A DNA stretch of 64,000 nt from Raja brachyura (Eukaryota), in the NCBI GenBank assembly GCA_963514005.1, contig OY740826.1, forward strand, positions 2,480,001 to 2,544,000, in the 5' to 3' direction. The position numbers and the translations under genes are program-made. Under the pieces are notes generated by a model. It worked only from the letters and a program-made list of their open reading frames with translations, ran no database searches and was not told where the DNA came from. This document shows positions 1-32,685 of the stretch, one piece after another (positions within the stretch are counted from its first letter, which is position 1; every line of letters starts with the position of its first letter).

Positions 1-254
1 TTGATCAGACTTTGCTGGTTTTACCTTGCACTAAACGCTATTCCCACATCTGTACACTGTAAATGGAACAATTGTAATTATGTGTAGGATGGCGCTGAGT
101 TACTCCAGCGCTTTGTGTCTATCTTCAGTGTAACCAGCATCTGCAGTTACATTAATACACAAAGTATTTCAGTGATCAGACTCTGCACAAAGTCGCAACT
201 CAGCTGAACTGGTGGTCGTTCGTGGGAACGAGCGACAGACACGGAATTACGTTC

Positions 255-371
255 CTGGGTTCTACCCGCTGGTCGAGTAGCGACTGACAAACATTCAGGG
301 GACCAGTGTCGTCATCCTCAGGGGCCGTCACTGTGTGGAGAACACGAATGTGTAGAGGAGTAGATTTGCAT
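255..371 (-). other. Orphan 117-nt exon-like segment (copy 0; donor mutated GT->GA)
   Basis: Strong acceptor ttttatttccgtttccag|. The paralogous copies at 50036-50152, 53301-53417 and 57346-57462 end in CCCAG|gtac, but this one ends CCCAG|gaac. One frame (phase 2-2) is open: CKSTPLHIRVLHTVTAPEDDDTGPLNVCQSLLDQRVEP. Confidence 0.5.
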
Positions 372-418
372 CTGGAAACGGAAATAAAACAAGGAAGTAT
401 TCTTTTATCAGCAAACGG

Positions 419-2056
419 TTAAGTAAATAAGTAAGTAAGTAAGTTTATTGGCCAAGTATTCACGTACAAGGAATTTGCCTTGGTGCTCCGCCCACAAGTA
501 ACAACATGACATACAGTGACAGTTATGAATGACTCAGAAAACACTAAACAATAATAATTATAAAACATTAATGATAAAATGCCAGGGTTACGTTTCTGAT
601 TTTCAAACCTGCAGTAAAACTCATTCAGGTCATTGGTCAGCTGATGATTGTCCAAAGAGCGGGGGACTTTCCTCTTGTAGCTGGTAATTTCTAGCAAGCC
701 CTTCCAAAGTGAAGAGTCTCTAGCTGAGAACTTGCTCCTCAACTTCTCAGAGTACCTTTCGTTAGCAGCTCTGATTCATCTTCTCAGCTGGTACTTGGCC
801 TGCCTGCAGAGGTCTGCATCCCCGCTTCTGTAGGCCTCCTCTTTAGACCGTTGGAGCTGTCTGAGTTCTGCAGTGAACCAGGGCTTGTTGTTGTTGAACC
901 ATGTCCGGGTCTTAGTTGTAATGCAACTGTCCTCGCAAAAGCTGGCATATTATGATACAGTGTCCGTATACTCATCGAGGCTTGTGGTTGCTTCCCTGAA
1001 CACATTCCAATCCGTGCAGTCAAAGCAGGATTGTAGGTTCTCAATGCCCTCGCTTGTCCACCTTTCGTTATTCTGACCACAGGCTTAGCAGCTTTTAGTT
1101 TCTGCGTGTAGGTCGGAATAAGGTGAACTAGACAATGATCAGAGAGACCCAGACCCGCGCGGGGAATAGAGCCATATGCGTTCTTGATTGCCGTATAACA
1201 CTGATCGAGTGTTCTCTCCCCTCTGGTGGGGCAGATAACATGAAGTCTGTATTTTAGAAGGTCACGGCTGAGGTTAGCTTTGTTAAAGTCCCCCAAAACA
1301 ATAACCTTGGAGTCCGGGAAGTCACTCTCTACCCTCATTACCTGGTCAGCGAGTTGCGTTTGCGCCTCATGTAGGCAGGCTTGGGGGGGAATGTAATCTC
1401 CAGCGAGAATAAAGGAATTAAATTCCCTCAGAGAGTAGAAGTGTTAACAGTTTATTAAGAGGGATTCTAGGTTGAGAGAGCAGAAATTTGACAGTACCCT
1501 GATGTCGCTCCACCAGCCCTGGTTGGTATAGAAGCATATTCCACCGCCTCTTAATTTCCCCGCTGCCTCCACTTCGCGGTCCGCTCTGTGAAGTTGGTAG
1601 CCAGCCAGTTGCAGCGCGCTGTCCGGGGTCAACTCACAAAGCCAGGTCTCGGTGAAACACAGGGCAGCAGCTCGAGAGAAGTCCTTGTTTGTCCGATGCA
1701 GGAGTTGCAGTTCGTCCACTTTGTTCTTGAGAGAACGTACGTTTGCCAGGAATATGCTGGGGAGTGGTGTGCGTGATCCTCGTCGCGGAGTCGATGAGTG
1801 CTCCAGAACGCTTCCCACGGGTCCTCCTCCATATCAAGACCTTGAATGCAACTACAGTCCCGCCGACGAGTATGTCCAAATAATCCAGCGAGTGAGAGAA
1901 ATCCAGAACGATGTTTGGAGGCACCGTATGTCCGATGTTTATGAATACATCTCTCATGAAAGTAATCTTTGTAGAGTTTTCACAGACGACACAAATGAAC
2001 AAACACATACAAAACAGCAAGGAGCAGTACACCGTGGCCGCCATCGTCGGCTCCAG
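419..2056 (-). mobile_element. Rex1/Babar-clade LINE, internally deleted and frameshifted
   Basis: APE endonuclease motifs PLPSIFLANVRSLKNKVDEL, CFTETWL, HRADR, GGGICFY, LGDFN, LDxCY, SDH spread over ORFs 1444-1818 and 784-1338. 3' tail AATAAA plus (CTTA)n at about 420-450. RT region missing. Confidence 0.8.
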
Positions 2057-2544
2057 CAGCAGCTGCACTGCAAACAGCTACACTGCAAGCAAGCTAACCC
2101 ATTTAACCCCAGATGGGGCATGACTTTGACTTATTGGAGGGAGTGCTGTACTGTGGGAAGAGTCCCTCACTATCTCTGCAAACCTATTCTGGCTGTGATC
2201 CTATTTCTGGTCTCTGTAATCCCCTCCCCACCAGCCCCGACACCTCTCCCTGTCAAATTGGAGGTATTTAATCTAACGGGTGTGCCAGCTTCCAGTTCCA
2301 CAGTGCCATGGTTAGGTTGCTCATTTGGATAAGAATGCACTGATTCAAGAATTGTTTAGGAAGGAACTGCAGATACTGGTTTGGACAGGCAGCATCTCTG
2401 GATAGAAGAAGGATCTCGACCCGAAACATCACCCATACCTTCTCTCCAGAGATACTGCCTGACCCGCTGAGTTACTGATTCAAGAATGTCTGGAATTGTG
2501 CAAGGCAAGTTTGCTGAATTAACTATGCAAAGTTTTATAATGAA

Positions 2545-4215
2545 CTAGACCAAGTTCAGACCCGTTGGATCTGTTCCCCCAACGTGCGGTTGCAGGGGAG
2601 GGAGGGCGGGGCAGCATGTCCCTGAGGGTGGGTGAGGGGGGTAGAGAGGGGCAGGGTAAGGGAGAGGAGAGGGGAAGGTGAGAGGAGAGGGGTTATGGGG
2701 AAGAGGGGAGGAAAAGGAGGTGAAGGGGAGAGGAGAGGGGGAGAAAGAGGGGTAGGGGAGGGGTGGAGAAAGAGGGGTAGGGGAGAGGTGGAGAGAGAGT
2801 GGAGGGGGAGGGAAAGAGAGAGAAAGGAGAGGTGGGGAGAGAGAGTGGGTGAGAGAGAGAGAAAGGAGAGGGGGAGAGGTGGGGAGGGGAGGGAGAGGGG
2901 GAGAGTGGGGAGTGAGGGGAAGAGGGGTAGCAGGGAGTGGTGCAAGAGCGAGGGGAAGGGGGTGGGGGGGAGATGGGGATGAAGAGGGTGGGGGAGAGTG
3001 GGGGTGGGAGTGGTGAGGAGAGTGGGAGGTGGAGAAGGGGAGAGGGAGGAGGAGGGGGGGTGGGGGAAGGTGTGAGAGGGTTCAGGGAAGGGTTGAGAGA
3101 GGGGTGGGAGGGGAAGGGGAGAGAGGGGGGAGAGTGTGGAGGGAGGGCGAGAGGGGTAGGGGAGAGAGAGGGAAGAGTGGAGGGAGGGGGAGAGTGGTAG
3201 GGGAGGGGGAAGAGTGAGGAGGGAGGGGGATAGCGGAGAGAGCGGGAAGAGTGGGGAGGGGAGGGAAGGGAGGGGGGAGAGAGGGGTGGGGGAGGGAGGG
3301 GGAAAGGTGGGGAATGGGGGAGAGAGAAGTGGAAGTGGGGAGGGAGGGTGAGAGGTGTAGGGGAGAGTGGTGGAAGTGGGAGAGAGGGAGGGGGAAGGGG
3401 GAGTGGTGGAAGAGGGAGAGAGGAGTAGGGGAAAGGGTGGGGGAGCTAGGGAGGGAGGGGAGAGAGAGGGTGGGGGAGGGAGAGAGGTGGGGTGGGAGGG
3501 GGAGGGAGGGGGAGAGGGGTAGGGGAAGTGGTACAGTGCCCCCCTAGTCACATGTGTGGGGGATATTAGGTGGTACAGAGTCCCCCTAGTCACATGTGTG
3601 GGGGAAGTGGTACAGTGTCCCTCTAGTCACGTGTGGGGGAAGTGGTACAGTGTCCCCCTAGTCACATGTGTGGGGGAAGTGGTGCAGTGTCCCCCTAGTC
3701 ACATGTGTGGGGGAAGTGGTACAGAGTCCCCCTAGTCACATGTGTGGAGGAAGTGGTACAGTGTCCCTCTAGTCACATGTATGGGGGAAGTGGTACAGTG
3801 TCCCTCTAGTCACATGTGTGGGGGAAGTTGTGCAGTGTCCCCCTAGTCACATGTGCAGGGGGGGGGGTGGGGCAGCATGTCCCTGAGGGTGGGTGAGGGG
3901 GTTAGAGAGGGGTGTGGTAAGGGGAAGGGGAGGGGAGAGGAGAGGGGAAGGTGAGAGGAGAGAGGTTATGGAGAAGAGGGGTGGAAAGGGAGGTGGAGGG
4001 GAGAGGAGAGGGGGAGAAACAGGGGTAGGGGAGAGGTGGAGAGAGAATGGAGGGAGAGGGAGAGAGAGTGAAAGGAGAGGGAGAGAGGTGTGGAGAGAGA
4101 GGGGGTGAGAGAGGAGGGGGAGAGAGAGGGAAAGGAGAGGGGGAGAGGTGGGGAGGGGAAGGAGAGGGGAAGAGTGGTGAGTGAGGGGAAGAGGGGTAGC
4201 AGGGAGGGGTAGCAG
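2545..4215 (-). mobile_element. Non-autonomous Helitron-like element (3' end) carrying G-rich tracts and a minisatellite
   Basis: The minus strand ends CAGATCC-aac-GGGTCTG hairpin, 8 nt, then CTAG|T at 2545-2548, the canonical Helitron 3' signature. Internal duplicated block at about 2607-2960 and 3869-4205. Upstream extent uncertain. Confidence 0.55.
3522..3856. repeat. 37-bp minisatellite, about 9 copies
   Basis: Unit GTGGTACAGTGTCCCCCTAGTCACATGTGTGGGGGAA in head-to-tail array with no unique spacers. Confidence 0.9.
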
Positions 4216-4836
4216 GGAGTCCTCCTCGCCATATGAGCCTCTGCCTGAGGCTGTTTGGGGAATCCTAGGGGCATGCGACCCCGATTGGAATACTTCATGG
4301 CTCATCATTGTCTGAAGCATTCTTTCCATTTGATCTAGACATCCCCATACCTTCTTGTTGGAAGGAGGGGAGTCTTCTTCATCAGACTCGTCAGGTAAAA
4401 TGGGCCTGACAGATTTCCGGTTGGCCTTTCTCCCTGCTGGAGTAGCCTCAGCACCCTGAGGCACTGGAGTTAATGGAGGCAGTTGAGCTGCCTGCAGTTC
4501 TGCAGTCAGCGACGGAGCTGGCGTTACGGTAGCCGGTATCTCCCTACCCGATCCGCAAGCACTAACCGTGGTCCCGCGAGTTAAACTCCTGCTACGGACG
4601 GCAGACTTTTTCGCAACTTTCTCCATTCTCTAATGACTGCCGCTGGCTCCTGAGCCAGTCTCACGGAGTTTAAATACCCGCAGAAAGTTTTGAAATCACT
4701 TACCTGCCGGTTTACTACTTACCGCTGGTGGAGCTGCGCTCTCCAGCCCGTCGGTGTGCCATGCGTTGGACGTAATGACGCACATGTGCCTGGCGGGGCT
4801 TCTTCACGTAGTCACTCACGTGACTCCGAAGTAAAA
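4215..4836 (-). mobile_element. DIRS-type tyrosine-recombinase retrotransposon, 5' fragment (left terminus plus start of gag-like ORF1)
   Basis: Terminus (A)TTTTACTTCGGAGTCACGTGAGTGAC matches the DIRS start at 62607 and is complementary to the ICR at about 5490-5511. ORF begins MEKVAKKSAVRSRS...LDQMERML. Confidence 0.65.
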
Positions 4837-4849
4837 TTGGCTACAGGTG

Positions 4850-5810
4850 CCATTACATTTTACATTCTGATCTACACAAGCAGAGCAGACCAGGGGTGGC
4901 AGGATTTAAGATCATTTTCGGATACCCCACGGTCTCACGACTATGTGGGAGGGCAGGCTTGCTATATTATATCCAGGCCACCAGAATCCTAAGAAGTGTG
5001 GAATCAGCGTTGTTTATTAATCGACAAACAACCACACAAGGGAAGGTCGGTTCAGATTATTTCAAGGTGGCTGCAGCAGGTTCTGGTTTATGCAGGTACT
5101 AACACTGACGATTGTAGATCTCATTCCACCAGGGCAGCATCAACGTCAGCGGCCAGGGCAATGGACATTCCCATCGACCATATCCTCGCGACCGCAGGAT
5201 GGTCAACTGAATTGTTTTTTAATTTTATTTTTACCATAGGCCGGTTACTGACCCGGGGTTTTTTGCCCATTCTGTTTTGCATCTACTTTAGCCTCCCCTG
5301 AGATACAGGGGTTGCTATTGATTTCTTTATTAACGTAAAGCATTAATACATTTGAATCAATATCATGTTTAATGCATTTTTTTGATTATTCACTCATCCT
5401 GACATTGATTATTCAATCAATGCAGTGAGACGCCGAGATTTGGATCTGCGGCATGATATCACAAAGCTTCAAACCCTTCACGGAATCACACACGTGACTC
5501 CGAAGTAAAATAGTAAGATTAAATGAGAACTTACCAGTTTGAAGTTTGATCTTGATTTTATGAGTAGTTACATTGGTGATTACGTGCCCTCCACGCCCAA
5601 CCCCCTCTCATAAAGGTCATCTGGCAGTTCTTGAGTAACGCATCTTACTATGTCACTTTGGTAATTGTTATTTGTGATTTCATACCGCTGCTTTGAAGAT
5701 TCACGCGCATGTGCACTGGTGGGGTTCTTCACGTAATCGCCAACGTAACTCCTCATAAAATCAAGATCAAACTTCAAACTGGTTAGTTCTCGTTTAATCT
5801 TACTATTTTC
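4850..5810 (+). mobile_element. DIRS-type retrotransposon 3' fragment (tyrosine recombinase C-terminus, ICR, right terminus)
   Basis: ISRWLQQVL...HSTRAASTSAA...ILATAGWS is the YR catalytic region. An approximately 80-bp inverted repeat (about 5507-5587 vs 5730-5810) fits the ICR/terminal-repeat layout. Confidence 0.85.
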
Positions 5811-6214
5811 CCCAATAAATAACCCGTGCCTGCCTTCTCCGCATATCCCTTGGCTGCACTCACCCCAAGAGCTCTATCTAACTCCCTCTTAAATCCATCC
5901 AGTGATTTGTCCTCCACTGCCCTCTGTGGCAGGGAATTCCACAAATTCACAACTTTCTGGGTGAAAACATTTTTTCTCACCTTCGTCTTAAATGGCCTCC
6001 CCTTTATTCTAAGACTGTGGCCCCTGGTTCTGGACTAAATAGTATCAGGATTAATCTTGTCCCTGCTCCACTATTAGATGACCATGACTGATTAGTTTTA
6101 GTTTAGTGTAGTGAAGAGAGACACAGCACGGAAACAGGACCTTCGGCCCACCGAGTCAGCATCGACCAGCGATCCCCGCACACTACACACACCATGGACA
6201 ATTTTATATTGAAG

Positions 6215-6830
6215 TCTCGTGATGAGGCTGCATGAAGAACCTGCCAGCTCACATGCGCGTCAATACGTCGTCGATGGCGCGGGATTTGGAGGCATTCGAA
6301 AATGAAAAATGAAAAGATATATTTGAGAATGTTGATTTATTTTACTTTTCATTCCTTTTCTGTTTTCTTTTTCCTCTTTCAATTGAGTTCAAGATGCTGA
6401 AAAACCTGAAGCAGGTGAATCACCTCAAGAGACAGTTCCTGATGGTGAAGCAGATGATCCGGTCCCAAAGCGACTGCTTCGATCCATGACAAGTGATGGT
6501 CAACAAACATGGACATGGGTGGAAAATTGTAGGTGGTGAATTGGACATTGACTAGGGTGATCTGCTTCCAGCCTCAAGCATCTTGCTAGAATTAACCTAC
6601 TGTTCATGCAAGAAACAAACTGTGAGAAATCAAGTGCAGGGAAAGGAAGATGCTCGTCAACAGCATGGTGTGCCATGTACAGATTTATGTAAGTGTGTTG
6701 ACTGTAGAAACTCTATTGCTGCAAAAGACTTGGAATCTGATGAAGAATATTCAGATGAAGATCAGATGTAATGTAAACAAATAAATTGGGGGAACTAAAT
6801 GATTATATAAAGTTTTATTTTAATGTCGCT
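6215..6830 (+). mobile_element. Internally deleted DNA transposon remnant with C-terminal CXC cysteine cluster (CMC/Chapaev-EnSpm-like, tentative)
   Basis: HGWK...LPASSILLELTYCSCKK...HGVPCTDLCKCVDCRN followed by an acidic tail, with an in-frame stop upstream; fused to an acidic N-terminal piece ending KRLLRS. Confidence 0.45.
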
Positions 6831-6834
6831 CGTT

Positions 6835-7710
6835 TCACTCGGGGCGCTGTACTGACAGCAGCCTCTGCCTGCAGCCTGTTTGTTTTTCCATCTTTTTTTA
6901 ATTTTTAGTCAGTTTAAGGTTTGTTTTTGGGGGAGTCTTTAACTTTTATATGTGGGGGAGGTGGGCAGGGTAAGGGGGAAACTAACTCCAAGTCGCTTCC
7001 TGGCGGCAACGCGACTATTTCTCCGAGTCGCGTCCTCGCCCCCAACAGCATGGCCGACAACCGGGATCGGAGCGGCCTTTCCTGCCGGGGACCAGGAACC
7101 GGACCAGAGCTACAATAGTGGCGGCGCGGCGCTGGAGTCACCGCGGAGTGGGCGATGCCTACCTGGATCGCCGCTTGGAGCTCCGGAGAGTTGGGCCGCT
7201 GCTCCAACGCCGTGAAGCTCTGGTTTGGAGAGCTTCCAACGCGGGCAGCGCTGAACAACTCTGTGGAGTCCTGGGGCCATTTGCCGAGGAGTTCCAGCGT
7301 TGCATCTCCACCCGGCGCGCCCTGTGGACTTTGGGAGCCGCAGACTCCGGTATGAGGGGGCAGACTCGAGGTCCAGGCCGCTGAGGACATCCCCCAGCCC
7401 CGACGTCAGACTTACATCACCCCGGCGAGGGGGCCTGAACATCGGGCCGCCCGTAGCGGCGACTGCGGATTGCTCGGGGAGGCCCCGACCACGGGTGAAC
7501 AGTGGGAACATCTGAGGAAGAGACCGACTTTGGTGCCTTCCTTCACTGTAGGAAATGTTGATCCTGCTGTGTGGGGATGTTTTATGTCGAATTCTATCAA
7601 CTCTATGTTGTGTTCTTTATTTTGCTGTATGGCTGCATGGTGATTTCATTTCACTGCGCCAATTGGCACACGTGACAAATAAATGTATCTTGTTGTATCT
7701 TGTATCTCTT
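6835..7710 (+). mobile_element. Unclassified GC-rich non-autonomous retroelement with LINE-like 3' tail
   Basis: GC/CpG-rich body with no recognisable protein. Ends in a stem-loop, AATAAA and (GTATCTT)n. Start and 3' motifs shared with 35800-36525. Confidence 0.5.
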
Positions 7711-7794
7711 CACTGTTTATTTGATCAAATTATTTAAACAATGAGTGAATTACTTATGATAATGGCGTGCTGGTGAATGACAGTGCGACAGTCC

Positions 7795-8080
7795 ACCCAC
7801 CCATCCACAAATACATACATACACACATCCACACACACATCCATCTGTACGCACACTTCCATGCATGCACACACATACATGTACACATACATCCACACAC
7901 ACATCCACACACACATCCACACATCCATCCACACATATGCATCCACACACATACACATACATCCCCACACACACATACATCCACACACACATACACATAC
8001 ATCCACGCATACATCCACACATTTACATCCACACATCTATAGATACACGTTTGACAGGTATACACAGACACACACACAAA
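7795..8080. repeat. Degenerate (CA)/(CATC/CATA) simple repeat
   Basis: Seen directly; it accounts for the His/Thr and Val/Cys ORFs here. Confidence 0.95.
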
Positions 8081-8877
8081 CTACAGATACTCAAACAATG
8101 AAACACATTTAGGGTTCTTTTAGGTTAAAGGTAATAGCCCTCATTTGCAAAGGCATAGGCTCATTTGCAAAAAATATAGGCTCATTGTAGCTTAAAATGA
8201 ATACATTGAGTAAACATCAGAGCATTCGATTCTTGGTCAGGATGTGACATTTACATCAGAAATAAGACTTTACTCTTGCAAGTCTGTCTCCCAACCTGGC
8301 ACTGCCCCAGTCCCACTATGGCCGTGACCCCCACTCTCCCCACTGGCAATCAGTGGGGTTCAGTAAACGGGGGAACCCAGAGAATTTGTCCTGACCCTTT
8401 AATTACGCAGGTTCATGAGCCCTTAAAACCTGGGACCTCTGCGGCAGTCTCATTCATTTTCCTATTGAAGCGACTGGAAGATGCCCTGCAGGACAGTCCC
8501 CCAGCCTGGCACTGCCCCAGTCCCACTATAGCCGTGACCCCCACTCTGCACACTGGCAGTCAGTGGGGTTCAGTAAAGGGAGGAACCCACAAGAACTGCC
8601 CTCACCCATTAATTAGGCTGGTTCAGGAGCCAGACCTCTGCAGCACTCATTCAAAAAACACACACAATTATATTCATTATATTATATTTATATCATATAG
8701 TTATACTTAATTATATGTGATTACAGCCATATTCACAAGTCATATATATATATAGGTATAATAATGTATAGTTTAAATGGACTGCAACACAGAAATAGGC
8801 TATCAATGGTGTAATATGGGTATTGTCCAATAGACGGCGCTGACTTTCCCGATCTCATTTTCTGGGCTGAGGGTCCA

Positions 8878-9100
8878 ATATTCCAGTCGACATCGCTCAG
8901 TGCATCCTGCAGCATGGCCTCTGGATGGTCAGACCACCGCTTTATGTCCCTCGTCACTGCCGCTTCCCGTACTATCCGTTCTTTATACTCCGGCAGCAGA
9001 TAAATGGCAGCGTGGTCAGATTTCCCAAAAGGAGGGAGAGAAACGGCCTTGTAGCCTTCCCTGAACGGCGTGTAGCAGTGGTCCAAAGCTCTCCCCCCCC
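8878..9100 (-). mobile_element. Rex1/Babar LINE fragment
   Basis: LDHCYTPFREGYKAVSLPPFGKSDHAAIYLLPEYK...WS...LQDALSDVDW (end of the APE domain). Confidence 0.8.
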
Positions 9101-9156
9101 TGGTGACTCCAGCACTTTGTACCTATTGAAGGCAGTGAAGGCTTGTATTTACTTAC

Positions 9157-9228
9157 CAAGAGAAAACATGAAGGGGTAAATCAAATCCACGAGCTTCTGA
9201 AAGGTATAAACGGTAGTCTCTGTATAGA
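9157..9228 (-). CDS. IZUMO/SPACA6/TMEM95-like gene, exon 2 (72 nt, phase 1-1)
   Basis: ctctctcttccattag| ... CTTG|gtaagt. Encodes (V)YTETTVYTFQKLVDLIYPFMFSL, in phase with the exon 1 donor. Confidence 0.6.
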
Positions 9229-9559
9229 CTAATGGAAGAGAGAGAGAGGGACAATGCTGATAAAGCCGGGAGCCGTGGGGTTATCTGAACACAATTAGCT
9301 TCTTCCCCACTAAACCCAAACACGTCCACTCTCTCCAGCACATGCTGACTATTCCCAGGGTACAAATGTCTGCTTAATAACCCGATGCTCCCTTCCTCAC
9401 CGCCCCTCCCTCCCTCCGCTATCCATCCCCCTCCCTCTCCCCATCCCTCCCAACCTACCCTCTCTCTCACTCTTCCTCCCTCCCCCCCACTCTCTCCCTC
9501 CTTCCTCTCTCCCTCCCTCACTCCCTCCCTCCCTCCCCCCCCCCCCCCCCCCCTCCTAC

Positions 9560-9937
9560 CCATTTTGAAGTCCTTGGAGTAAGTGATAACCGGGTCCAGC
9601 TGAGTGGAACATTCGTCCTCAGAAGCCGCGATCAGACGCGGTTGACAAAAATGCTGGAGAAACTCAGCGGGTGAGGCAGCATCTATGGAGCGAAGGAATA
9701 GGTGACGTCGCCTACTCCTTTGTTGCATAGATGCTGCCTCACCCGTTGAGTTTCTCCAGCATGTTTGTTTACCTTTGATTTTTCCAGCATCTGCAGTTCT
9801 TTCTTAAACATCAGACAGCGGTTCATCAGGTCGAGGAACTTGGACCAGAGCCGGCGGTCGCAGTTCACACAAGCGCAGCCCCTGTGAGCCAACACGGCGA
9901 GGAGGAGAAACACAGAAGCCAGATTATTCTGGGACAT
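9560..9937 (-). pseudogene. IZUMO/SPACA6/TMEM95-like gene, exon 1 interrupted by a 166-bp insertion (pseudogene or splice-rescued)
   Basis: ATG at 9937 (aagATG). Removing the insertion and one TSD copy gives MSQNNLASVFLLLAVLAHRGCACVNCDRRLWSKFLDLMNRCLIAASEDECSTQLDPVITYSKDFKM G|gtagga: a signal peptide followed by CxxC. Confidence 0.6.
9644..9809. mobile_element. Penelope-derived palindromic insertion with TSD
   Basis: Near-perfect inverted repeat centred on GACGTC, from the same family as other Penelope ends in the window. Flanked by ATCAGAC-GCGGTT (9631-9643) and ATCAGACAGCGGTT (9810-9823). Confidence 0.8.
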
Positions 9938-10244
9938 CTTGACCTCGGCGCTGGCTGAAAAACCTTCTCGCCTTGTGGGCGACATCGTCCGAGAACATCC
10001 CCGACGTCAACAAAGGTCTCCAGGATGTCCCGTCACAAACACCAACCCACGCCCCGACACAAACATTGGAGACACAGAGTGCTGGAGTAACTCAGCGGGA
10101 CAGGCAGCATCTCTGGAGAACACGGATAGGGAGAGGGAAGGGGGGGGGGGGGGGGGAGAGAGAGGGAGGGAGGGAGGGAGGGAGAGAGGGATGAGAGGAA
10201 AGGGCAGAGGGAAGGAGGATGGGAGAGGGGGAGGAAGGGAGGGG

Positions 10245-10545
10245 CGGTGAGGAGGGGAGCATCGGGTTATTACACAGACATTTGTACCCTGGGAATAGTC
10301 AGGATGTGCTGGAGAGAGTGGACGTGTTTGGGTTTAGTGGGGAAGAAGCTAATTGTGTTCAGATAAGCTCACGGCTCCCGTCTTCATCAGCATCGACTGT
10401 CTCTCTCTCTCGCTCTCTCACTCCCTCCCTTCCATTAGTCTATAGAGACACTATGGTTTATACCTTTCAGAACCTCATGGATTTGATTTCATGTTTTCAC
10501 TTGGTAAGTAAATACAAGCCTTCAATGCCTTCAATCGGTACAAAG
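10245..10545 (+). pseudogene. Inverted duplicate of IZUMO-like intron 1/exon 2 (7-nt deletion in exon)
   Basis: Reverse-complement match to about 9115-9410; exon at 10439-10503 is frameshifted. Confidence 0.75.
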
Positions 10546-11049
10546 TGCTGGAGTAACTCAGCGGGTCAGGCAGCATCTCTGAACTGGGGTGGTGAGAGGG
10601 AGGGAGGAATAGAGGGAAGGAGGGAGAGAGAGAAGGAGAATGGAAGGGAGAGAGGGAGGAAGGGAGGGGGACAGTGGGAGTAGAGGGGGTGTGGGTGAGG
10701 GAGGGAAGGAGAGAGGGAGTGAGGAGAGAGAGAGAGAGAAGGAGGGACAGAGGAAGAGATTTATTGTGAGTGGGACGTTAGATTTGGAGGGAGAGAGAAG
10801 GGAGGGATGGAGGGAGGGTCGGTGAGGAGTGGGGTCAACAGGTTATTAAACAGACATTTATCAGACAACAGACAAAGACGATAGGGATGAGGAGAGAGAG
10901 GAAGGGAGAGAGTGAGAGAGGGAGGGAGAGAGTGAGAGAGGGAGAGCAAGAGAGAGGGGGGAGGGGAGAGGGAGTGATGGAGAGAGGGAGGAGGGAGCGA
11001 GTGAGGTTGGGATGGGGGAGAGGGAAGGTGGATGGGAGGGAGGGGGGGA

Positions 11050-11350
11050 GCGGTGAGGAGGGGAGCATCGGGTTATTACACAGACGTTTGTACCCTGGGA
11101 ATAGTCAGGATATGCTGGAGAGAGTGGACGTGTTTGGGTTTAGTGGGGAAGAAGCTAATTGTGTTCGCATGACCCCATGGTTCCCGTCTTTATCAGCATT
11201 GACTCTGTCTCTCTCTCTCTTCCTCTCTTGCATTAATCTATACAGAGACTATGGTTTATACCTTCCAGAAGCTCATGGATTTGATTGACCCCTTCATGTT
11301 TTCACTTGGTAAGTACATACAAGCCTTCACTGCATTCAATAGGTACAAAG
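11050..11350 (+). pseudogene. Second inverted duplicate of IZUMO-like intron 1/exon 2 (acceptor AG->AA)
   Basis: Exon frame intact (YTETMVYTFQKLMDLIDPFMFSL) with gtaagt donor, but the acceptor reads cattaa. Confidence 0.75.
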
Positions 11351-11424
11351 TGCTGGAGTAACTCAGCGGGACAGGCAACATCTCTGGAAGAACAGGTGAT
11401 GTTACAGAAGGGTCCCAACTCGAC

Positions 11425-13682: not shown

Positions 13683-14816
13683 ATGCAGCACTCCTCCCCT
13701 CCCCCGAAGAAAACGGGCCTAAGAAAAGAGGCTGGTGCCACCAAAGCCTCGGGCTCGAGTCTGACTGCCTCCCAGGAAGAAATCTCACAGAGAAAAGTGG
13801 AAATGGAAGAGTTTAAAAATTCCATGATAGGTGAGATGAAGAAACTGGTGAAAGAAATAAAAGATCTGAAGAAGGAATATAAAGATGAATTTAAAGACAT
13901 GAAGAAAGAATATAAAGATGAAATAAAAAATCTAAAAGCGGAGATTCTGGTGTCTCACGAGAGAACTAAAGTGGAATTAACAAAAGAAGTTACCGAGACG
14001 GTAAAGATTATGATGAGCGAATGGAAAAGTAAGACGGAGGCTGAATTTCAAAACCGATTCTCTGAGATAAACGTCAAGGTTGCTGGGTTGGAACAAATGC
14101 TGAATGATAAGATAGATCCTATTACCATTACAATTGACCAACATAATGATACACTTAAAGATTTGGCTGATTTTGCTGTAAAAAGTGCCAAGGAAACTGA
14201 GAAGTTACTTGCCGAGAATAAACGCCTCTCAGAATTACTTCGCAAAATAAATGAGAAATGTATTGATTTGGAGGGCCGACAAAGACGTAAGAATTTGCGA
14301 ATTGTAGGATTGACTGAAGGTTGTGAAGGAAATCAAGACCCACGAAAATTTGCTGCAAAACTCCTAAAAGACATTTTGGAATTGGATGAAGAACCACTGT
14401 TGGGCCGTGCCCACAGGGCTTTAAGACGGGTCCCTGGGAGAGGTGCACCACCCAGACAAATGATTGTAAAGGTGGTGTATGATCACGTCTTTGAAGATAT
14501 GATGAAGATAATAATGAGAAAGAGAAATTTGAAATACGAAGGAAATAACATTAGTATCTTCAGAGATTACCCAGCGGAAGTTGCTAAGAGAAGATCCTTA
14601 TTCACTGAAACAAGAGGCATTCTACGGAATTTAAAGAATACAGTGGATCTCAGATATGGTTTGATGTACCCAGCAACACTGAGAGTGACCTATGACAACA
14701 AGGAACACCGCTTCGTTAAGCATACTGATGCATTGAAGTTCGCAAAAGGCATACAGAAGAAGGCAGAAGAGGAGGAAACAGACGATGAATCACGGGAGGA
14801 AGAAGACGACGACTGA
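13683..14816 (+). CDS. L1 ORF1p (coiled coil plus RRM/CTD, transposase-22 family), 377 aa
   Basis: LEGRQRRKNLRIVGLTE, RAHR, IFRDY and YGLMYPATLRV motifs. Confidence 0.95.
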   Translation: MQHSSPPPKKTGLRKEAGATKASGSSLTASQEEISQRKVEMEEFKNSMIGEMKKLVKEIKDLKKEYKDEFKDMKKEYKDEIKNLKAEILVSHERTKVELTKEVTETVKIMMSEWKSKTEAEFQNRFSEINVKVAGLEQMLNDKIDPITITIDQHNDTLKDLADFAVKSAKETEKLLAENKRLSELLRKINEKCIDLEGRQRRKNLRIVGLTEGCEGNQDPRKFAAKLLKDILELDEEPLLGRAHRALRRVPGRGAPPRQMIVKVVYDHVFEDMMKIIMRKRNLKYEGNNISIFRDYPAEVAKRRSLFTETRGILRNLKNTVDLRYGLMYPATLRVTYDNKEHRFVKHTDALKFAKGIQKKAEEEETDDESREEEDDD

Positions 14817-15429
14817 ACATTTTGGACTTTTATCATTAACCTGCGGTTATGAGTTATTCAGTGAGAAAGAGGGAAAATAATGGGAATGTAGTAGTGGTTT
14901 GGTATCAATTTGTAGAATTTCAATAATTCCCCTAACATAGTATTATTTATCATAATACTAATTACAATAGAATAGTAATTAATAAATAGTTTCATGAATA
15001 ATAGAAATAATTACTAAACCCTTAAAGTTAGTACCCCACCCCAATATATACAGTATTCTAGTTGGGAGCTGGAATATTTAACATCTTTTTTAAACACGGA
15101 AGTCATTAGATTAATCGCCACGTTAGTGTGGCGTTCACTAACACACACTACACAATCTATCAGTGTAGTCTTTTTTTTCTTTGGGCACCCTTTTAACACT
15201 CTTTTTTCTTTTTTCGCTTATATTTTCTATTTTTTTTAATATATTAAGTATTTGAATTTATGTGATATATTATATGAATGTAATTATGAGCAATACCGTA
15301 TAGTTATTTTAGATAGACATGGATATGGATTATTGAGATTGGTAATTTTCGTCGGATTGACGTTTGGGTGCCTTGTTGAGCTGGAGGGGCCGAGAGGGCT
15401 ACTCCAAAAAAAACCACCCTAATACTAAA

Positions 15430-18400
15430 ATGCAAGATATGAATTTGAAGACTGGGGATGATGGAATCACTTTTTGTAGTTGGAATGTTAAGGGAATTAA
15501 TGAACCAATTAAAAGGGGTAAGGTGTTAGCGCAGCTGAATAGATTGAAATCAGACGTTATTTTCCTCCAAGAGACGCATCTCAAAAGAGATGATCAATAT
15601 AGATTAACAGCTAAATGGATGTCAAAGGTATATCACTCTTCATTTATACATAAATCTAGGGGAGTCGCAATAATTATTCGTAAAGGTATACCTTTTAAAC
15701 AAAGTTCTATAATAGAAGATAAAGAGGGCAGATATGTAATAATTACAGGGGAATTATACTCAAAAAAAGTAATTCTTATGAATATATATGCTCCTAATTT
15801 CGATAACCCATTATTTTTCAAGAAAATATTCAATAATATTCCTATATCCACTCAACATAATTTAATAATTGGGGGCGATTTAAATTGCACTTTGGATAAC
15901 TACTTAGACAGATCCTCAACAAAAAGGAAAGCTATTTCTAACTCAAGTAAACTTATAAATTCTTTCATTAACTCAACTAACGTTAAGGATATTTGGAGAT
16001 TAGAGAACCCATCCGGACGAGAATATTCTTTTTTCTCGCCCGTATTCGGAACCTACTCGAGGATAGATTACTTTTTAATAGACTCAAAACTGCTTCCCTA
16101 TGCATACAATGCAAAATATCACAATATTATTATTTCAGATCATGCACCATTAACATTTAAGATAAAACTAAAAGATATATCTAATAAAACTATGACTTGG
16201 AGATTTAATCCTCAGATACTGAAGGACAAGGATTGTTGTAATCATGTGACAGAACAGATTAAATTATTCTTTGAGACAAACGACACACCTGAAATTTCAC
16301 CATTGTTACTTTGGGATACATTTAAGGCATTCATGCGTGGTGCAATAATATCGGCACAAGCATATTTTAATAAAGAAAACCGAAAGAAGGAACAGAAGTT
16401 AGAAATGGAGATAAAACAACTAGACAATGAGAATATAAAACACCCCTCTAAGGAGTTAAGTAATAAAATTGCAATAGCAAAGTATAGACTAAACGAAATA
16501 TACTCTAATCAAGTCATCAAACTTTATCAACAAACCAAACAAGTGCATTTTGAATTTGGAGATAAACCGCATAAATTGCTAGCAAGACAATTAAGAAAAT
16601 TAGACGATGAAAAAACGATACATGGAATTAGATCAATGCAAGGAAATATACTGACCATACCAAAAGATATTAATGATAGATTTTTACAATATTACCAAAA
16701 TCTTTACTCATCAAAATTAACAGGACAAACAGATGGAATGGAAACATTTCTAAAAGAATGTCAAATTAAGAGTTTAGATCAGGAAGGGAGACATTTGTTA
16801 AATGCTGAAATATCAGTGAAAGATATCGCAGAATCAATTGGTTCGTTAAAGAATGGAAAAGCTGCGGGGCCTGACGGCCTGAGTGCAGAATTTTATAAAA
16901 AATTTCAAGATCTGATCTCTCCAAGACTACATACAGTGTATAGACATGCATACGAACAAGGAAAATTACCAGACTCTTTAAATGAATCCACAATTACACT
17001 TATACCTAAGGTAGATAAAGATCTGGAAGATCCTGGTTCATATAGAGCGATTGCCCTTCTAAATACAGACCAAAAAATATTAGCTAAAGTTTTATCTAGG
17101 AGACTAAGTTTGGTGATCTCTAAATTAATACATTATGATCAAACAGGTTTTATTCCAAAACGCTATTCGTCTCATAATTTAAGACGCCTGTTTAATATTA
17201 TATATTCTAAAAGAATACGAGATACGGAATTAGCAGTCATATCGTTAGACGCAGAAAAAGCATTTGACCAGGTGGAATGGTTATATCTATTTAATATAAT
17301 GGAAAAGTTTCAATTGGGGGATCAATTTTGTAAATGGGTAAGAATCCTATACTCAGATCCTACTGCAAGAATTCTAACTAATCAAATACTATCAGTTAAA
17401 TTTAAACTCTTTAGGGGATGTAGACAAGGATGTCCGTTATCGCCTTTATTATTTGCCTTGGCGATAGAGCCTTTGGCGGAAAGAATTAGGTCAGAACCTG
17501 AAATATACGGTTATAATACTGACAGAACAACTAATAAAATATCCTTATATGCAGATGATGTTTTGATTTACATCACAAAACCTGAAATTAGTATTCCAAT
17601 GTTGTTTGATGTTATAAATAAATTTAGTACATTTTCTGGATATAGGATTAATTGGAATAAAAGTGATATTATGCCAATAACTAATATAAATTTAAACATA
17701 TTACAACAATATCCATTATCAATAGTTACTGACAAAATTAAATATTTAGGAATTAATGTATCTAAATCACATAACTCATTAATTAGATCGAATTATCCTC
17801 AATTATTAGATAAACTTAAAAAAAATATTTTATATTGGAAAACACTGCCTATATCTTTGATTGGTAGAATAAATGCTATAAAGATGGTTTTTCTACCACA
17901 ATTATTATATCTGTTTCAAGCTATCCCTTTTTTCCTTCCGAAAACCTTTTTTAAAAAAATTGATAATATTGTTAATAGTTTTATTTGGGATTATAAAAAT
18001 CATAGAATAAGTAAAAAACATTTATGTAAGTCAAAGATAAATGGAGGATTAGCACTTCCAAATTTTTTATACTACTTCTGGGCAGTACAGATTAAGAATA
18101 TGAATTTTTGGTGGGTAAATACGGACCTGGAACCAACGTGGCTAAAGATAGAAAAGGAAGATTGTTTGCCTTTCAACGTAGATTCAATTATTTTTGCCCC
18201 AAAGGAAGTTCAAAAAAAAACTTATAGGGACAATCCAATCATTTATAATAATAGACGTATTTGGAAACAAATAGTCAAGACTTTACAATTAGACAACCTT
18301 TCATTTAGATTACCAATTATGAATAACCCATTATTTAAGCCCTCCACATTGGATGGAGGGTTCAGACATTGGGATAATTTAGGAATTACAAGGGTAGAGC

Positions 18401-19218
18401 ACCTTTATAGAAATGGAAAATTTCTTTCATTTCAGGAATTACAAGATATCTACGGATTGTCTTCACAGCATTTGTTTAGGTATTTCCAAATTAGAGATTA
18501 TATTAAATCTAATACACAGGATTTTAAAAATAAGGAACCAGGATTATTAGATGAATCGTTTAACTGGCATCCAACCACAGAAAAATTAATAGCTTATATA
18601 TATAACATCATTATGGATAATGAGAATCCAATAACTGAAACATATCGTCAAGCATGGGAAAATGAAATTGGATCACCTATAACCAAAGAAAATTGGGGAG
18701 AAAGTCTACAAAGAATACACCGGTGCTCGTTAAATGCTAGACATATATTAATACAATTTAAAGTATTATATAGATTACATTATTCAAAAGCCAAATTAAA
18801 TAGTATATTTCCTAATCTCTCCTCTATTTGTGATAAATGTAAGAATTTAGAAGCAAATTTAACACACAGTTTTGTTACATGTCCTAAATTGAATTATTAT
18901 TGGACAGAAATTTTTAAAGTAATTTCTGAAGTTCTTAAGGTTAAATTAGAACCTGACCCAAAGCTAATAATACTGGGAATTCCAGAGGCTAATTTGATAT
19001 TTACACCAGACCAAAGAAATTTCCTTGATTATTGTTTGATATTGGGGAAAAAAATAATATTGAAATTTTGGAAGGGAACATTATCCCCAACAATTAAAAT
19101 GTGGGCATCAGAGATGTTGGAGACGTTGCAGTTGGAAAGAATCAGATTTGTCCTTTTGGACGAGTATAATTCTTTTCAACAGATATGGTCTCCATATATA
19201 CAGTATTTAGAGAAGTAG
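15430..19218 (+). CDS. L1 ORF2p (APE endonuclease, reverse transcriptase, CCHC), about 1262 aa from the first ATG
   Basis: SWNVKG, LQETH, GGDLN, SRIDY, SDH; SLDAEKAFD, RQGCPLSP, LYADD; CDKC-x8-H-x4-C. No stops or frameshifts. Confidence 0.97.
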   Translation: MQDMNLKTGDDGITFCSWNVKGINEPIKRGKVLAQLNRLKSDVIFLQETHLKRDDQYRLTAKWMSKVYHSSFIHKSRGVAIIIRKGIPFKQSSIIEDKEGRYVIITGELYSKKVILMNIYAPNFDNPLFFKKIFNNIPISTQHNLIIGGDLNCTLDNYLDRSSTKRKAISNSSKLINSFINSTNVKDIWRLENPSGREYSFFSPVFGTYSRIDYFLIDSKLLPYAYNAKYHNIIISDHAPLTFKIKLKDISNKTMTWRFNPQILKDKDCCNHVTEQIKLFFETNDTPEISPLLLWDTFKAFMRGAIISAQAYFNKENRKKEQKLEMEIKQLDNENIKHPSKELSNKIAIAKYRLNEIYSNQVIKLYQQTKQVHFEFGDKPHKLLARQLRKLDDEKTIHGIRSMQGNILTIPKDINDRFLQYYQNLYSSKLTGQTDGMETFLKECQIKSLDQEGRHLLNAEISVKDIAESIGSLKNGKAAGPDGLSAEFYKKFQDLISPRLHTVYRHAYEQGKLPDSLNESTITLIPKVDKDLEDPGSYRAIALLNTDQKILAKVLSRRLSLVISKLIHYDQTGFIPKRYSSHNLRRLFNIIYSKRIRDTELAVISLDAEKAFDQVEWLYLFNIMEKFQLGDQFCKWVRILYSDPTARILTNQILSVKFKLFRGCRQGCPLSPLLFALAIEPLAERIRSEPEIYGYNTDRTTNKISLYADDVLIYITKPEISIPMLFDVINKFSTFSGYRINWNKSDIMPITNINLNILQQYPLSIVTDKIKYLGINVSKSHNSLIRSNYPQLLDKLKKNILYWKTLPISLIGRINAIKMVFLPQLLYLFQAIPFFLPKTFFKKIDNIVNSFIWDYKNHRISKKHLCKSKINGGLALPNFLYYFWAVQIKNMNFWWVNTDLEPTWLKIEKEDCLPFNVDSIIFAPKEVQKKTYRDNPIIYNNRRIWKQIVKTLQLDNLSFRLPIMNNPLFKPSTLDGGFRHWDNLGITRVEHLYRNGKFLSFQELQDIYGLSSQHLFRYFQIRDYIKSNTQDFKNKEPGLLDESFNWHPTTEKLIAYIYNIIMDNENPITETYRQAWENEIGSPITKENWGESLQRIHRCSLNARHILIQFKVLYRLHYSKAKLNSIFPNLSSICDKCKNLEANLTHSFVTCPKLNYYWTEIFKVISEVLKVKLEPDPKLIILGIPEANLIFTPDQRNFLDYCLILGKKIILKFWKGTLSPTIKMWASEMLETLQLERIRFVLLDEYNSFQQIWSPYIQYLEK

Positions 19219-27627: not shown

Positions 27628-29674
27628 CTGCAGCAACAGAAGATCACACCAAGTTTACAGCACATCTGCACATCAGCAAAGTCCAAGTACAAAGTTGCAG
27701 TTGTATTGGACGTTGGTCATAAAGTCATGAGGTCATTAATGATAGGAGCAGAATTAAATCATTCAGCCCATCAAGTCTACTCCGCCATTCAATCATGGCT
27801 GATCTAACTCTTCCTCCTAATCCCATTCTCCTGCCTTTTTCCCATAACCCCTGACATCCATACTAATCAATAACCTATCCATCCCTGCCTTAAAAATATC
27901 CATTAACTTGGCCTCCACAGCCTTCTGCGGCAAAGAATTCCACAGATTCACCACCCTCTGACTAAAGGAATTCCTCTCAGCTGCTTCCTGAAGGAACGTC
28001 CTTTAATTCTGAGGCTACGACCTCTAGTCCTAGACTCTCCCACTAGTGGAAACATCCTCTCCACGTCCACTCAATCCAAGCCTTTCACTATTCAGCAGGT
28101 TTCAATGCATTTAGAGTATTGTGTTCAGTTCTGGGCACCATGTTGTCGGGGAGATGTTGTCAAGCTCGAAAGGGTGCCGAGACGATTTACGTGGATGTTG
28201 CCAGGACTCAATGGCCTGAGCTACAGGGAGAGGATGAGCAGGCTGATTCTCTATTCCTTGGGGAACAGGAGGATGAGGGGTGATCTTATAGAGAGGTGTT
28301 TAAAATCATGAGAGGAATAGATGGGGTAGACGCACAGAGCATCTTGCCCAGAGTGGGGAATCGTGGACCAGAGGTCAGAGGTTTAATGTGGGGGGGGGGG
28401 GGGGGGGTGGTGGGTGAGATTCAATAGGAACCTGAGCGCTAACATTTTCACACAAAGGGTAGTGGGTGTATGGAACGAGCTGCCGGAGGAAGTAGTTGAG
28501 CCATGGGAGTAATGTTTAAGAAACAGTTAGGCAGGTAAATGGATGGGATGGGTTTAGAGTGACATGGACCAAACGCAGGCAGGTGGGACTAGTGTAGATG
28601 GGGCATGTTGGCCGATATGGGCAAGTTGGGCCGAAGGGCCCGTTTCCACACTGTGTGACAACTACAAACAGGGGCCATGCCATTGATTTTTCCAATTTCA
28701 TGCAACTCCTGCATTCCTTTCCCCCCCCCTCTCCACTCCCACCCCTCCCCCACCCTAGTCATCCGCCTAGTTCCACTGTTCACATCATTCTATCCCTGTC
28801 TTTAGCACACAATCCCCAGCCAACAATGGGCCATTGTGGGCTCCACCCTTCATAAGTTCAAGAAACAGAATTACGCCATTCGGCCCATCAAGTCTACTCC
28901 GTCAATCAATCATGGCTGATCTATCTCTCCCTCTCAATCCCATTCTCCTGCCATCTCCCCATAATCCTGACACCCGTACTAATCAAGAACCTATCTATCT
29001 TGGCCTTAAACATATCGATTGGCTTGGCGTCAACAGCCTTCTGCGGCAAAGAATTCCACAGATTCACCACCCTATGACTGAAGAAATTCCTCCTCATCTT
29101 CTTCCTAAAGTTAGTTCTTTAATTCTACGGCTGTGGCCTCTGGTCCTAGACTCTCCCACTAGTGGAAACATCCTCTCCATATCCACTCTTTCCAGAACAT
29201 TCACTATTCATTAAATTTCAATGAGGTCCCCCCCTCATCCTTCTAAACTCCAGCTAGTACAGGCCCAGTAAGTGTCAAACGCTCATCATATGTTAATCAT
29301 TCTCGTAAACCTCCTTTGGACCCTCTCCAGAGCCAGCACAACCTCCCTCAGATATGGGGCCCAAAACGGCTCTTAACAGTCCAAAGGTCATCTGTTGCTG
29401 GCTCTGTTTTGTTCTGACTTTCTCAACCTTTCAGTCTGAAGAAGGTCCCGACCGAAAATGTCACCTATTCCTTAATCCCCAGAGATGCTGCCTGACCCGC
29501 TGAGTTACTCCAGCACATTGTACCTATCCGTGTTCTCCAGAGATGCTGCCTGACTTGCCGAGTTACTCCAGCATTTTGTGTCTGTGAACAGGAGTTAGCC
29601 TGGCAGAAGCAGTCATAAGAAGCAGATGACAAAGATGGATTTGGGAGTGAAAATGTGGATTTATTTAAACTTAC

Positions 29675-29771
29675 CGCTGTGTATACTTGTAGATGAAGAA
29701 TCCAGCTAGCTCAGCGATCAGTATTATCCCTGCTGTAAGCAAAACTGCCATCCAAATACTGAAGCTTTTAG
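29675..29771 (-). CDS. Siglec-like transmembrane exon (97 nt, phase 1-2)
   Basis: ttgttcttacag| ... CG|gtaagt. (A)KSFSIWMAVLLTAGIILIAELAGFFIYKYTQR. Confidence 0.85.
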
Positions 29772-31036
29772 CTGTAAGAACAACCAGAGGTGTGTTTTCA
29801 GATTTTTCAGTTTAATTTATTGTCACGTGTAACGAGGTACAGTGAAAAGCTTTTGTGGCGTGCTATCCAGTCAGTGGAAAGGCAACACATGATTACTCTC
29901 TCCCCCTGCCCACACACCCCTCCCCCCCACACTCCACCCCCCCCCCCCCACCCACACACACCCCTCCCTCCCACACACCCTCACCCTGCCCACACACACC
30001 CCTCCCTCACCTTAGATCCTCTGGCCACTAGTACATCAGGGAAATTGTTTGTGTCTTCCTTAGTGAAGACGGATCGGATGCTTTCAACAGAGAGTACGAT
30101 AGAGCTCTTAAAGATAGCAGAGTCAAGGAATATGGTGAGAAGGCAGGAATGGGGTACTGAATGTGGATGATCAGCCATGATCAAATTGAATGGCGGTGTT
30201 GGCCGAAGGGCCGAATGGCCTTCTCTGCACCTACTGTTTATTGTCAAAGTACCTGTTCAACTCGTCTGCTATTTCCCTGTTCTCCAAAATAAACTCACCT
30301 GTTTCAGTCTTCAAGATTCCAACTTTGGCTTAACTAATTTTTTCCTCTTCACATAGCAAAGGAAGCTTTTACTATCCTCCTTTATATTCTTGGCTAGCTT
30401 ACCTTCGTACCTCATCTTTTCTCCCCGCATTACCTTTTTAGTTATCTTCTGTTGCTCTTTAAGTTACCCAATCCTCTGGCTTCCCACTCATCTTTGCAAT
30501 GTTATACTTCTACTCTACTATTTTCATACTCTCCCTGACTTCCCTTGTCAGCCACGTTCGCCCCTTACTCCCCTTGGAATCTTTCTTTCTCTTTGGAATG
30601 AACTGATCCTGCAACTTCTGTATTATTCCCAGAAATACCTGCCATTGTTGTACCACTGTCATCCCTGCCAGGGTATCTTTCCAATCAACTTTGGCCAGCT
30701 CCTCCCTCATGACTCCATAGTCCCCTTTGTTCAACTTTAATACTGACATTTCTGATTTTCTCTTCTCTGCCTCAAATTGTATATTAAAACATATTATGGT
30801 CCCTACCTGCTAATGGCTTCTTTACCTCGCGTTCCCTTATGAAATCCGGTTCATTACACAACACTTAGGTTGTTGTGTAATGAGAATGTTGCCAGCCCTC
30901 GAGAATTAGACAGGTACACGATGAGGTCAGGTTTGCAAGGGTATGGGCCAAATGCAGGCAGGTGGGACTGGTGTAGGTGCGACATGTTGGTTGGTATGGG
31001 CACGTTGGGCCGAAGAACCTGTTTCCACACGGTATG

Positions 31037-31370: not shown

Positions 31371-31475
31371 TGTGTAGTAATGGCAATGGAAAGTTGGCCA
31401 TTGTAAAAGTTAGAAATGGCCATTACAGTTTGACTCTCTGGCTCTCTGACTTCTCTCGCCCAGAGATGTCCTCAC

Positions 31476-32680: not shown

Positions 32681-32685
32681 AACGG

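Follow-up and report, generated by a model that had tools for sequence, protein, structure and literature searches.

A 64,000-nt stretch of the genome of the ray Raja brachyura (contig OY740826.1 of assembly GCA_963514005.1, positions 2,480,001 to 2,544,000), which we call the window and in whose numbering all coordinates are given, carries at 9157-9937, on its minus strand, the first two exons of a protein-coding gene. These exons are the 5' end of a conserved, transcribed elasmobranch gene encoding a type I membrane protein of ~220 aa. The family to which this protein belongs is probably a new addition to the IST superfamily (IZUMO, SPACA6, TMEM95) as defined by structure, filed neither under Pfam IZUMO nor under Pfam TMEM95. 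What the window holds is best described, with somewhat more caution, as the likely 5' end of a TMEM95-like IST gene that is devoid of an immunoglobulin (Ig) domain and that is damaged in this ray.

Exons 1 and 2 are the 5' end of a conserved, transcribed elasmobranch gene

The first part of exon 1 (9812-9937, minus strand) opens with an ATG at 9937, from which 42 codons (9937-9812) encode a hydrophobic leader, corresponding to the signal peptide, followed by C-V-N-C-D, a helix-like stretch (helix 1) and a third cysteine (..NRCL). A second ATG lies upstream, at 9985, in frame with that at 9937 and in agreement with the N terminus of an ortholog (P0001, see below). The exon is then interrupted by a repeat, and past the second copy of the target-site duplication that flanks this repeat, the original frame resumes for 23 codons. 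This second part of exon 1 (9560-9630, minus strand) reads ..AASEDEC..DFKM, contains the fourth cysteine and ends at a splice donor (G/GT at 9560/9559). When the 166-bp insertion and the second duplication copy are removed (179 nt in all), a 199-nt coding exon 1 is obtained, which ends at 9560 with the donor G/GTAGGA. Intron 1 (9229-9559, minus strand) is 331 nt long, with a 5' half consisting of CCCT/GAGG-type low-complexity sequence, and it leads to the copy of exon 2 that we refer to as copy A (9157-9228, minus strand). This 72-nt exon, in phase 1 at both ends, encodes a predicted helix 3 and has intact splice sites on both sides (acceptor CCATTAG/, donor G/GTAAGT), and its last G is compatible with the Asp that is next in line in all orthologs. 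An earlier note on this DNA, made from the sequence alone, had described a 199-nt exon restored by deleting the insertion plus one duplication copy and spliced in phase to a 72-nt exon, a reconstruction that proved accurate to the base.

High-confidence evidence that these exons belong to a real gene came from homology searches. Searching the 42 aa of the first part of exon 1 against 1.84 billion representative proteins returned one strong match, P0001 (E=4.9e-16, 88% identity). This protein has 265 aa and is encoded, with no introns, on a Logan contig of 956 nt. The contig is a spliced transcript, because it is only 956 nt long and yet encodes all 265 aa. P0001 is colinear with the three coding pieces of the window, to which it is identical at 37 of 42 (residues 17-58), 20 of 23 (60-82) and 21 of 23 positions (84-106), and it runs without a break both over the insertion site (..NRCL-I-VASEDEC..) and over the exon 1/2 junction (..DFKM-V-YTET..). 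Word-based searches added three shark proteins from NCBI, XP_067831459.1 (Heptranchias perlo), XP_072326277.1 (Scyliorhinus torazame) and XP_038668818.1 (S. canicula LOC119974183), which are 59-60% identical to P0001. The earlier note had claimed a divergent and possibly unannotated IST paralog. The core of this claim, membership of IST, is supported by the evidence presented below; as for the gene being unannotated, all three shark genomes do annotate it, each as an "uncharacterized protein." A literature search for LOC119974183 retrieved no paper.

Two further sequences bear on the limits of exon 2. P0007, which is isoform X2 of S. torazame, is without precisely the 24 residues encoded by this exon, and P0004, a second transcript contig, has a different 5' end joined directly to the first residue past exon 2, at the start of exon 3. 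In catshark, exon 2, which encodes the predicted helix 3, acts as an in-frame cassette that can be skipped. A profile search with the family alignment, which consists of four orthologs (P0001, P0005, P0006 and P0008), yielded no additional, more distant relatives, and the members found are from elasmobranchs only.

The possibility that the exons are chance open reading frames (ORFs) within repeats was rejected: exon 1 occurs once in the window, and its ortholog is backed by a transcript. The first part of exon 1 also matches the hidden Markov model (HMM) of the family, with E=5.6e-15. For all searches and folds, the exon pieces were used singly and the joined 90-aa model was kept out. Used in this way, no match was found in Pfam with each exon piece and with the 100-aa ORF that runs from exon 1 into the repeat, in the PDB with the first part of exon 1 (phmmer), or in a length-limited search for homologous proteins with residues 17-58 of the 100-aa ORF, and the ESM Atlas returned no usable match for the first part of exon 1 alone.

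Cysteine plan and domain order of the family are closest to those of TMEM95

The four aligned orthologs share the same architecture: a signal peptide, C-M-N-C-D, a third and a fourth cysteine, four predicted helices, a β-hairpin, a stalk, a transmembrane (TM) helix and a tail. Their ectodomains display ten cysteines with an invariant spacing of 2, 14, 8, 60, 3, 10, 2, 6 and 5 residues. The N-terminal C-M-N-C is itself invariant, and a hinge cluster, C-x3-C-x10-C-x2-C-x6-C-x5-C, is found in all four proteins after the four predicted helices and before the TM helix. In both AlphaFold2 (AF2) models that we produced, which have a predicted local distance difference test score (pLDDT) of only ~46, four helices are followed by a hairpin in which the second CxxC (C124-x-x-C127 in P0006) sits at the tip, between two predicted strands. 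An invariant N-C-S sequon is located there as well. Within the ectodomain, conservation is highest in helix 4, with 17 of 20 positions invariant. The stalk, which spans the 20-50 residues from the last hinge cysteine to the TM helix, has no Ig match in Pfam and no predicted strands. As for the C-terminal portion, 24 of the 29 positions of the TM helix and 17 of the 27 residues of the tail are invariant. In the ray, C-V-N-C adjoins the hydrophobic leader directly, which is the N-terminal placement of CxxC typical of IST proteins, and all four N-terminal cysteines are intact.

The stalk also contains an invariant R-x-R-R (R150, R152 and R153 in P0006), ~13 residues ahead of the TM helix, which conforms to a proprotein-convertase-type consensus. 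Judging from this motif, release of the ectodomain, or its processing by a convertase, is suggested.

IST proteins have been defined by a distorted four-helix bundle, with a CXXC on a small N-terminal helix and another CXXC at the tip of a hinge hairpin, the two being linked by two disulfides (Vance et al., PMC9482655). The helices of the bundle alternate between antiparallel and parallel and present a triangular face (PMC9482655). The ten cysteines of SPACA6 (7TA2) are at positions 27, 30, 41, 55, 124, 128, 139, 142, 147 and 153, that is, with spacings of 2, 10, 13, 68, 3, 10, 2, 4 and 5 (PMC9482655). In the shark family, the ten cysteines of the ectodomain follow this order too, and in the hinge the x3, x10 and x2 spacings are identical, followed by x4 in SPACA6 vs. 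x6 in the sharks and then by x5 in both. The two differ in the N-terminal spacing (x10 and x13 in SPACA6, x14 and x8 in the sharks) and in the segment that leads from the hinge to the TM helix, which contains an Ig-like domain in SPACA6 and amounts to 20-50 residues in the shark and ray proteins.

The resemblance to TMEM95 (7UX0; PF15203) is more extensive. Like the shark family, TMEM95 is an Ig-less type I protein of similar size, with a single TM helix and a signal peptide followed by CxxC. Its published disulfides, C35-C45, C105-C134 and C109-C128, define intervals of 9, 59, 3, 18 and 5 residues, and the same cysteine stretch measures 8, 60, 3, 20 and 5 residues in the sharks. The extra disulfide C35-C45 has its counterpart in C39 and C48 of P0006, which would pair likewise, while C105, C109, C128 and C134 of the TMEM95 hinge match the C-x3-C ... 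C-x5-C of the sharks, and both have an N-glycan sequon in the hairpin. Among IST proteins, a disulfide that joins helix 1 to helix 2 has been reported for SPACA6 and TMEM95 only, not for the IZUMOs. The differences are that no similarity is detectable by HMMER, that x8 in the sharks replaces x9, and that the second CxxC is preceded by x10 in the sharks; in TMEM95, it is preceded by x8. In addition, the invariant R-x-R-R in the stalk and the unusually conserved TM helix and tail belong to the shark family. Two expectations of the earlier note were borne out by this comparison. The C-x2-C-x14-C-x8-C spacing, which it described as close to that of TMEM95, is invariant in the family and fits the published cysteine positions of TMEM95 and SPACA6, and the downstream CxxxC/CxxC cluster that it expected of homologs is carried by P0001, P0005, P0006 and P0008.

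Other IST proteins are less similar in plan. IZUMO2 and IZUMO3 (PF15005) are Ig-less IST proteins with a four-helix bundle, a hinge and two CxxC motifs, and their length is similar to that of the shark family, which differs from them in having no PF15005 match and in its helix 1-2 cysteine pair, a disulfide not reported for IZUMOs. TEX51 is set apart by its range, with reports confined to mammals, lizards, snakes and turtles. We infer that the plan of the family is closest to that of TMEM95, because the cysteine spacings match, the helix 1-2 pair is present and there is no room for an Ig domain.

Probable assignment of the family to the IST superfamily

An independent indication comes from comparison by a protein language model. 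In the ESM Atlas, the nearest neighbors of P0006 are two IZUMO3 clusters (0.95 and 0.94, with 212 of 256 features shared), together with clusters of TMEM95 (0.90) and IZUMO2 (0.84); by the rating of the tool itself, scores <0.9 are leads only, and it is through these Atlas neighbors, as a lead, that the family is linked to PF15005. When the first AF2 model was submitted to Foldseek, the chain ranked first of 350,542 PDB chains was 7UX0_A, the ectodomain of human TMEM95, with E=1.1 and a query of poor pLDDT. Residues 70-141 of the model are aligned with 60-135 of 7UX0_A, in a register that sets C140 on C134. With the second model, equally poor in pLDDT, TMEM95 was not among the results, and the wide search was dominated by the TM helix.

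Several observations weigh against assigning the family to IST. The profile match to the Pfam families IZUMO (PF15005) and TMEM95 (PF15203) that the earlier note had looked to was not obtained, neither with the pieces from the window nor with P0001, P0005, P0006 and P0008, at E<=10. Sequence searches of the PDB, including an hmmsearch with the family profile, retrieved no IST chain; the sole match, short and due to chance, was to density-regulated protein. The AF2 models, built on alignments of just 3-5 sequences, are poor (mean pLDDT of 46.9 and 45.9), and among the ESM Atlas neighbors of P0006 are also Kit ligand (0.85), Flt3 ligand (0.83) and CSF-1 (0.81). Finally, conservation of the protein peaks in its TM helix and tail, a distribution that may or may not be typical of IST.

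The presence of cytokines among the Atlas neighbors raises the alternative that the family is a membrane-anchored precursor of a helical ligand, shed at R-x-R-R, with a likeness to IST that is convergent. Kit ligand, Flt3 ligand and CSF-1 do share with the shark family a membrane-anchored ectodomain made of a helical bundle and a short tail, and they are releasable by cleavage, which would tally with the invariant R150, R152 and R153, with the conserved TM helix and tail and with the four predicted helices. However, their Atlas scores are <0.9 and rank under those of the IZUMO/TMEM95 clusters, and the shark family has no match to Pfam SCF, Flt3_lig or CSF-1 (PF02404, PF02947 or PF05337). These ligands are not known to have the ten-cysteine plan, paired CxxC motifs or a hinge, and a convertase site is equally compatible with a sperm IST protein. 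We thus regard this explanation as quite improbable. Slightly less so, but still unlikely, is that this is a new family of cysteine-rich type I membrane proteins that occurs in cartilaginous fishes alone, has no relation to IST and matches it in its cysteines by coincidence. The lack of any sequence-profile link to a known family speaks for it, as do the finding of members in elasmobranchs only and a fold that is based on poor models. It would, however, require that the order of ten cysteines, their near-identical spacings, their placement relative to the signal peptide, the four helices and the hairpin, the order of domains and the Atlas neighbors all coincide, and TMEM95 is the top Foldseek match for one of the models. 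Membership of the IST superfamily is therefore the reading that we retain for the family.

A hairpin repeat interrupts exon 1 of the ray gene

The sequence that splits exon 1 is a 166-bp interspersed repeat (9644-9809) capable of forming a hairpin and resembling a miniature inverted-repeat transposable element (MITE) or a short interspersed element (SINE); the orthologs are contiguous across the site. The two arms of the hairpin (9640-9706 and 9707-9773), 67 nt each, are 87% complementary, and ~30 further partial copies of the repeat are present across the window. It is flanked on the minus strand by a target-site duplication, of which copy 1 (9810-9823, AACCGCTGTCTGAT, 14 nt) keeps the reading frame and copy 2 (9631-9643, AACCGCGTCTGAT, 13 nt) is one base shorter. 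The insertion falls between the two cysteines that would form the extra helix 1-2 disulfide. Without splicing, the frame enters the repeat and meets a stop at 9683 (ORF 9683-9985). The repeat nevertheless contains a potential cryptic intron, with a good donor at 9772 (AAG/GTAAAC) and a good acceptor at 9663 (TTTCTCCAG/), which keeps the frame and is free of stops. If it were used, an in-frame product could be made, with 23 extra residues that include one extra cysteine. Enumeration of the GT-AG pairs at the insertion identified none that gives back the native sequence.

The region around exon 1 has also been rearranged. A unit consisting of intron 1, exon 2 and a further 61 bp is present three times, once on the minus strand (copy A, 9103-9554, which contains exon 2 copy A) and twice on the plus strand, as a tandem upstream of exon 1, which is thereby flanked by inverted arms made of unit copies. 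Copy B (10139-10557, plus strand) is an inverted duplicate in which exon 2 (10439-10503) has become a pseudo-exon, its frame shifted by a 7-nt deletion and another indel. In copy C (10956-11362, plus strand), likewise an inverted duplicate, the frame of the exon (11237-11308) is open and the acceptor AG is changed to AA. Copies B and C form a tandem pair with a period of ~806 nt. The unit copies differ from one another by 6-11% in the exon and 6-9% in the intron, so exon 2 is not better conserved than the intron. Because of this divergence, the unit copies are real and old, and we rejected the possibility that the copies of exon 2 are a fold-back artifact of the assembly.

The homology shared by the three copies stops at 9096-9103. 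Next to copy A, starting 61 bp past the end of exon 2, the sequence is taken over by a fragment of a retroelement-like repeat (8736-9086, minus strand), whose ORF is related (E=2e-9) to a repeat ORF at 54113-55066 and has no match in Pfam. In copies B and C, the unit terminates in the same hairpin repeat family as the exon 1 insertion.

The ray copy is probably disabled

Exons 3 onward, which would encode helix 4, the hinge, the TM helix and the tail, were not found in the window, either by tblastn, run on the whole of it, or by an unfiltered six-frame scan with the family HMM, which covered 1-7860 and 7930-64000. Similarly, a six-frame regular-expression scan for a hinge-like cysteine cluster produced only chance matches in repeats. 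The earlier note, too, had found no later exons in the window, and nothing past exon 2 has emerged from these searches. The window extends only 9.1 kb downstream of exon 2, and the remaining exons may lie off it, beyond this distance. Within the exons that are present, the ray departs from the orthologs at five positions that are invariant among them: M to V (in CxxC), S to T, T to S, M to T and M to V.

On balance, the ray copy is probably a pseudogene or a disabled allele, because a repeat lies in exon 1, the intron 1/exon 2 unit has been copied twice more and exons 3 onward are not within the 9.1 kb available. There is some possibility, which we consider the weaker one, that the gene still works, with the repeat spliced out, at least in part, or present as a polymorphism of the sequenced haplotype, and with exons 3 onward to the left of the window. 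Within the insertion, a GT-AG pair that is in frame and free of stops does exist, copy A of exon 2 retains its frame and both splice sites, the N-terminal cysteines have all been kept, and a long intron 2 would be enough to place the later exons outside a window with so little downstream sequence. However, no GT-AG pair restores the native protein, the insert would separate the cysteines of a disulfide and add a fifth one, and the five changes affect positions that are otherwise invariant. Moreover, among the copies of exon 2, the exon has diverged no more slowly than the intron, and a retroelement-like fragment lies 61 bp downstream. These points favor a damaged copy of the gene.

Other features of the window

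A Siglec/CD22-like gene is found at 29600-42977 (minus strand), with a V-set exon that passes the model for the first Ig domain of CD22 (Ig_CD22) and two C2-set_2-type exons. The earlier note had placed the exons next to a Siglec, and "Siglec-like" is a fair label in view of these V-set/CD22 and C2-set domains; the accompanying argument from synteny with human 19q13 is weak. In human, SPACA6 harbors the miR-99/let-7/miR-125 cluster. A search of 1-7860 and 7930-64000 with Rfam detected no microRNA or any other RNA family, including this cluster.

Several repeats lie elsewhere in the window. An apparently full-length L1-like long interspersed element (LINE) at 13683-19218 (plus strand) has an open ORF1 of 377 aa and an open ORF2 of 1284 aa (Exo_endo_phos, RVT_1), and a 3' fragment of a related copy is found at 58700-59950 (minus strand). 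Another element is repeated at 47247-48572, 50405-51204, 54110-55066 and 60220-60716, always on the minus strand, with long ORFs that share the start MFLNLLKNGS... These ORFs contain a proline-rich tandem repeat of the PPLHTPSPT type, and one copy leads to an end that resembles a retroelement endonuclease (LDHCYT...GLSDH). The fragment at 8736-9086, next to unit copy A, is related to this element. Lastly, a tandem array at 3522-3855, consisting of 8.9 copies of a 37-nt unit with 89% matches, lies within a GA-rich low-complexity tract (2640-4220).

Possible implications for gamete fusion in cartilaginous fishes

By analogy with IST proteins only, the family may have a role in sperm-egg recognition or fusion. 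In the mechanism that we envisage, the two CxxC motifs would staple the N-terminal helix to the hairpin of the hinge, and helices 3 and 4 would face outward; in TMEM95, it is the α3/α4 surface that is bound by FIMP. The near-invariant TM helix and tail would engage a partner in the membrane, and the protein, if placed in the sperm membrane, would serve as a gamete recognition/fusion factor or belong, as one subunit, to a complex of this kind.

TMEM95 has been traced back to amphibians only (PMC9482655), and it is not among the sperm factors that have known fish orthologs. That the shark and ray family is the TMEM95 ortholog of cartilaginous fishes, or a surviving ancestral Ig-less IST gene, is a tentative proposal that we consider possible rather than probable. 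If true, a TMEM95-type factor would have arisen at the base of jawed vertebrates, not in tetrapods, and would have been lost in ray-finned fishes and kept in a lineage that, like amniotes, fertilizes internally. There would also be two features not described for IST, the invariant convertase-type R-x-R-R and the near-invariant TM helix and tail, which would point to processing of the ectodomain and to a partner embedded in the membrane, respectively.

The family itself outweighs the damaged copy in the ray, which is an example of an exon hit by a hairpin repeat and by local inverted and tandem duplication. A TMEM95-like IST protein in sharks and rays, missed by standard profiles, would take the superfamily back to the base of jawed vertebrates, and it would illustrate how a cysteine plan can reveal IST members where Pfam fails. 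Gamete fusion in vertebrates is known to require no more than a handful of sperm proteins, and the shark and ray family would offer, in a group that fertilizes internally, a testable candidate fertilization factor.

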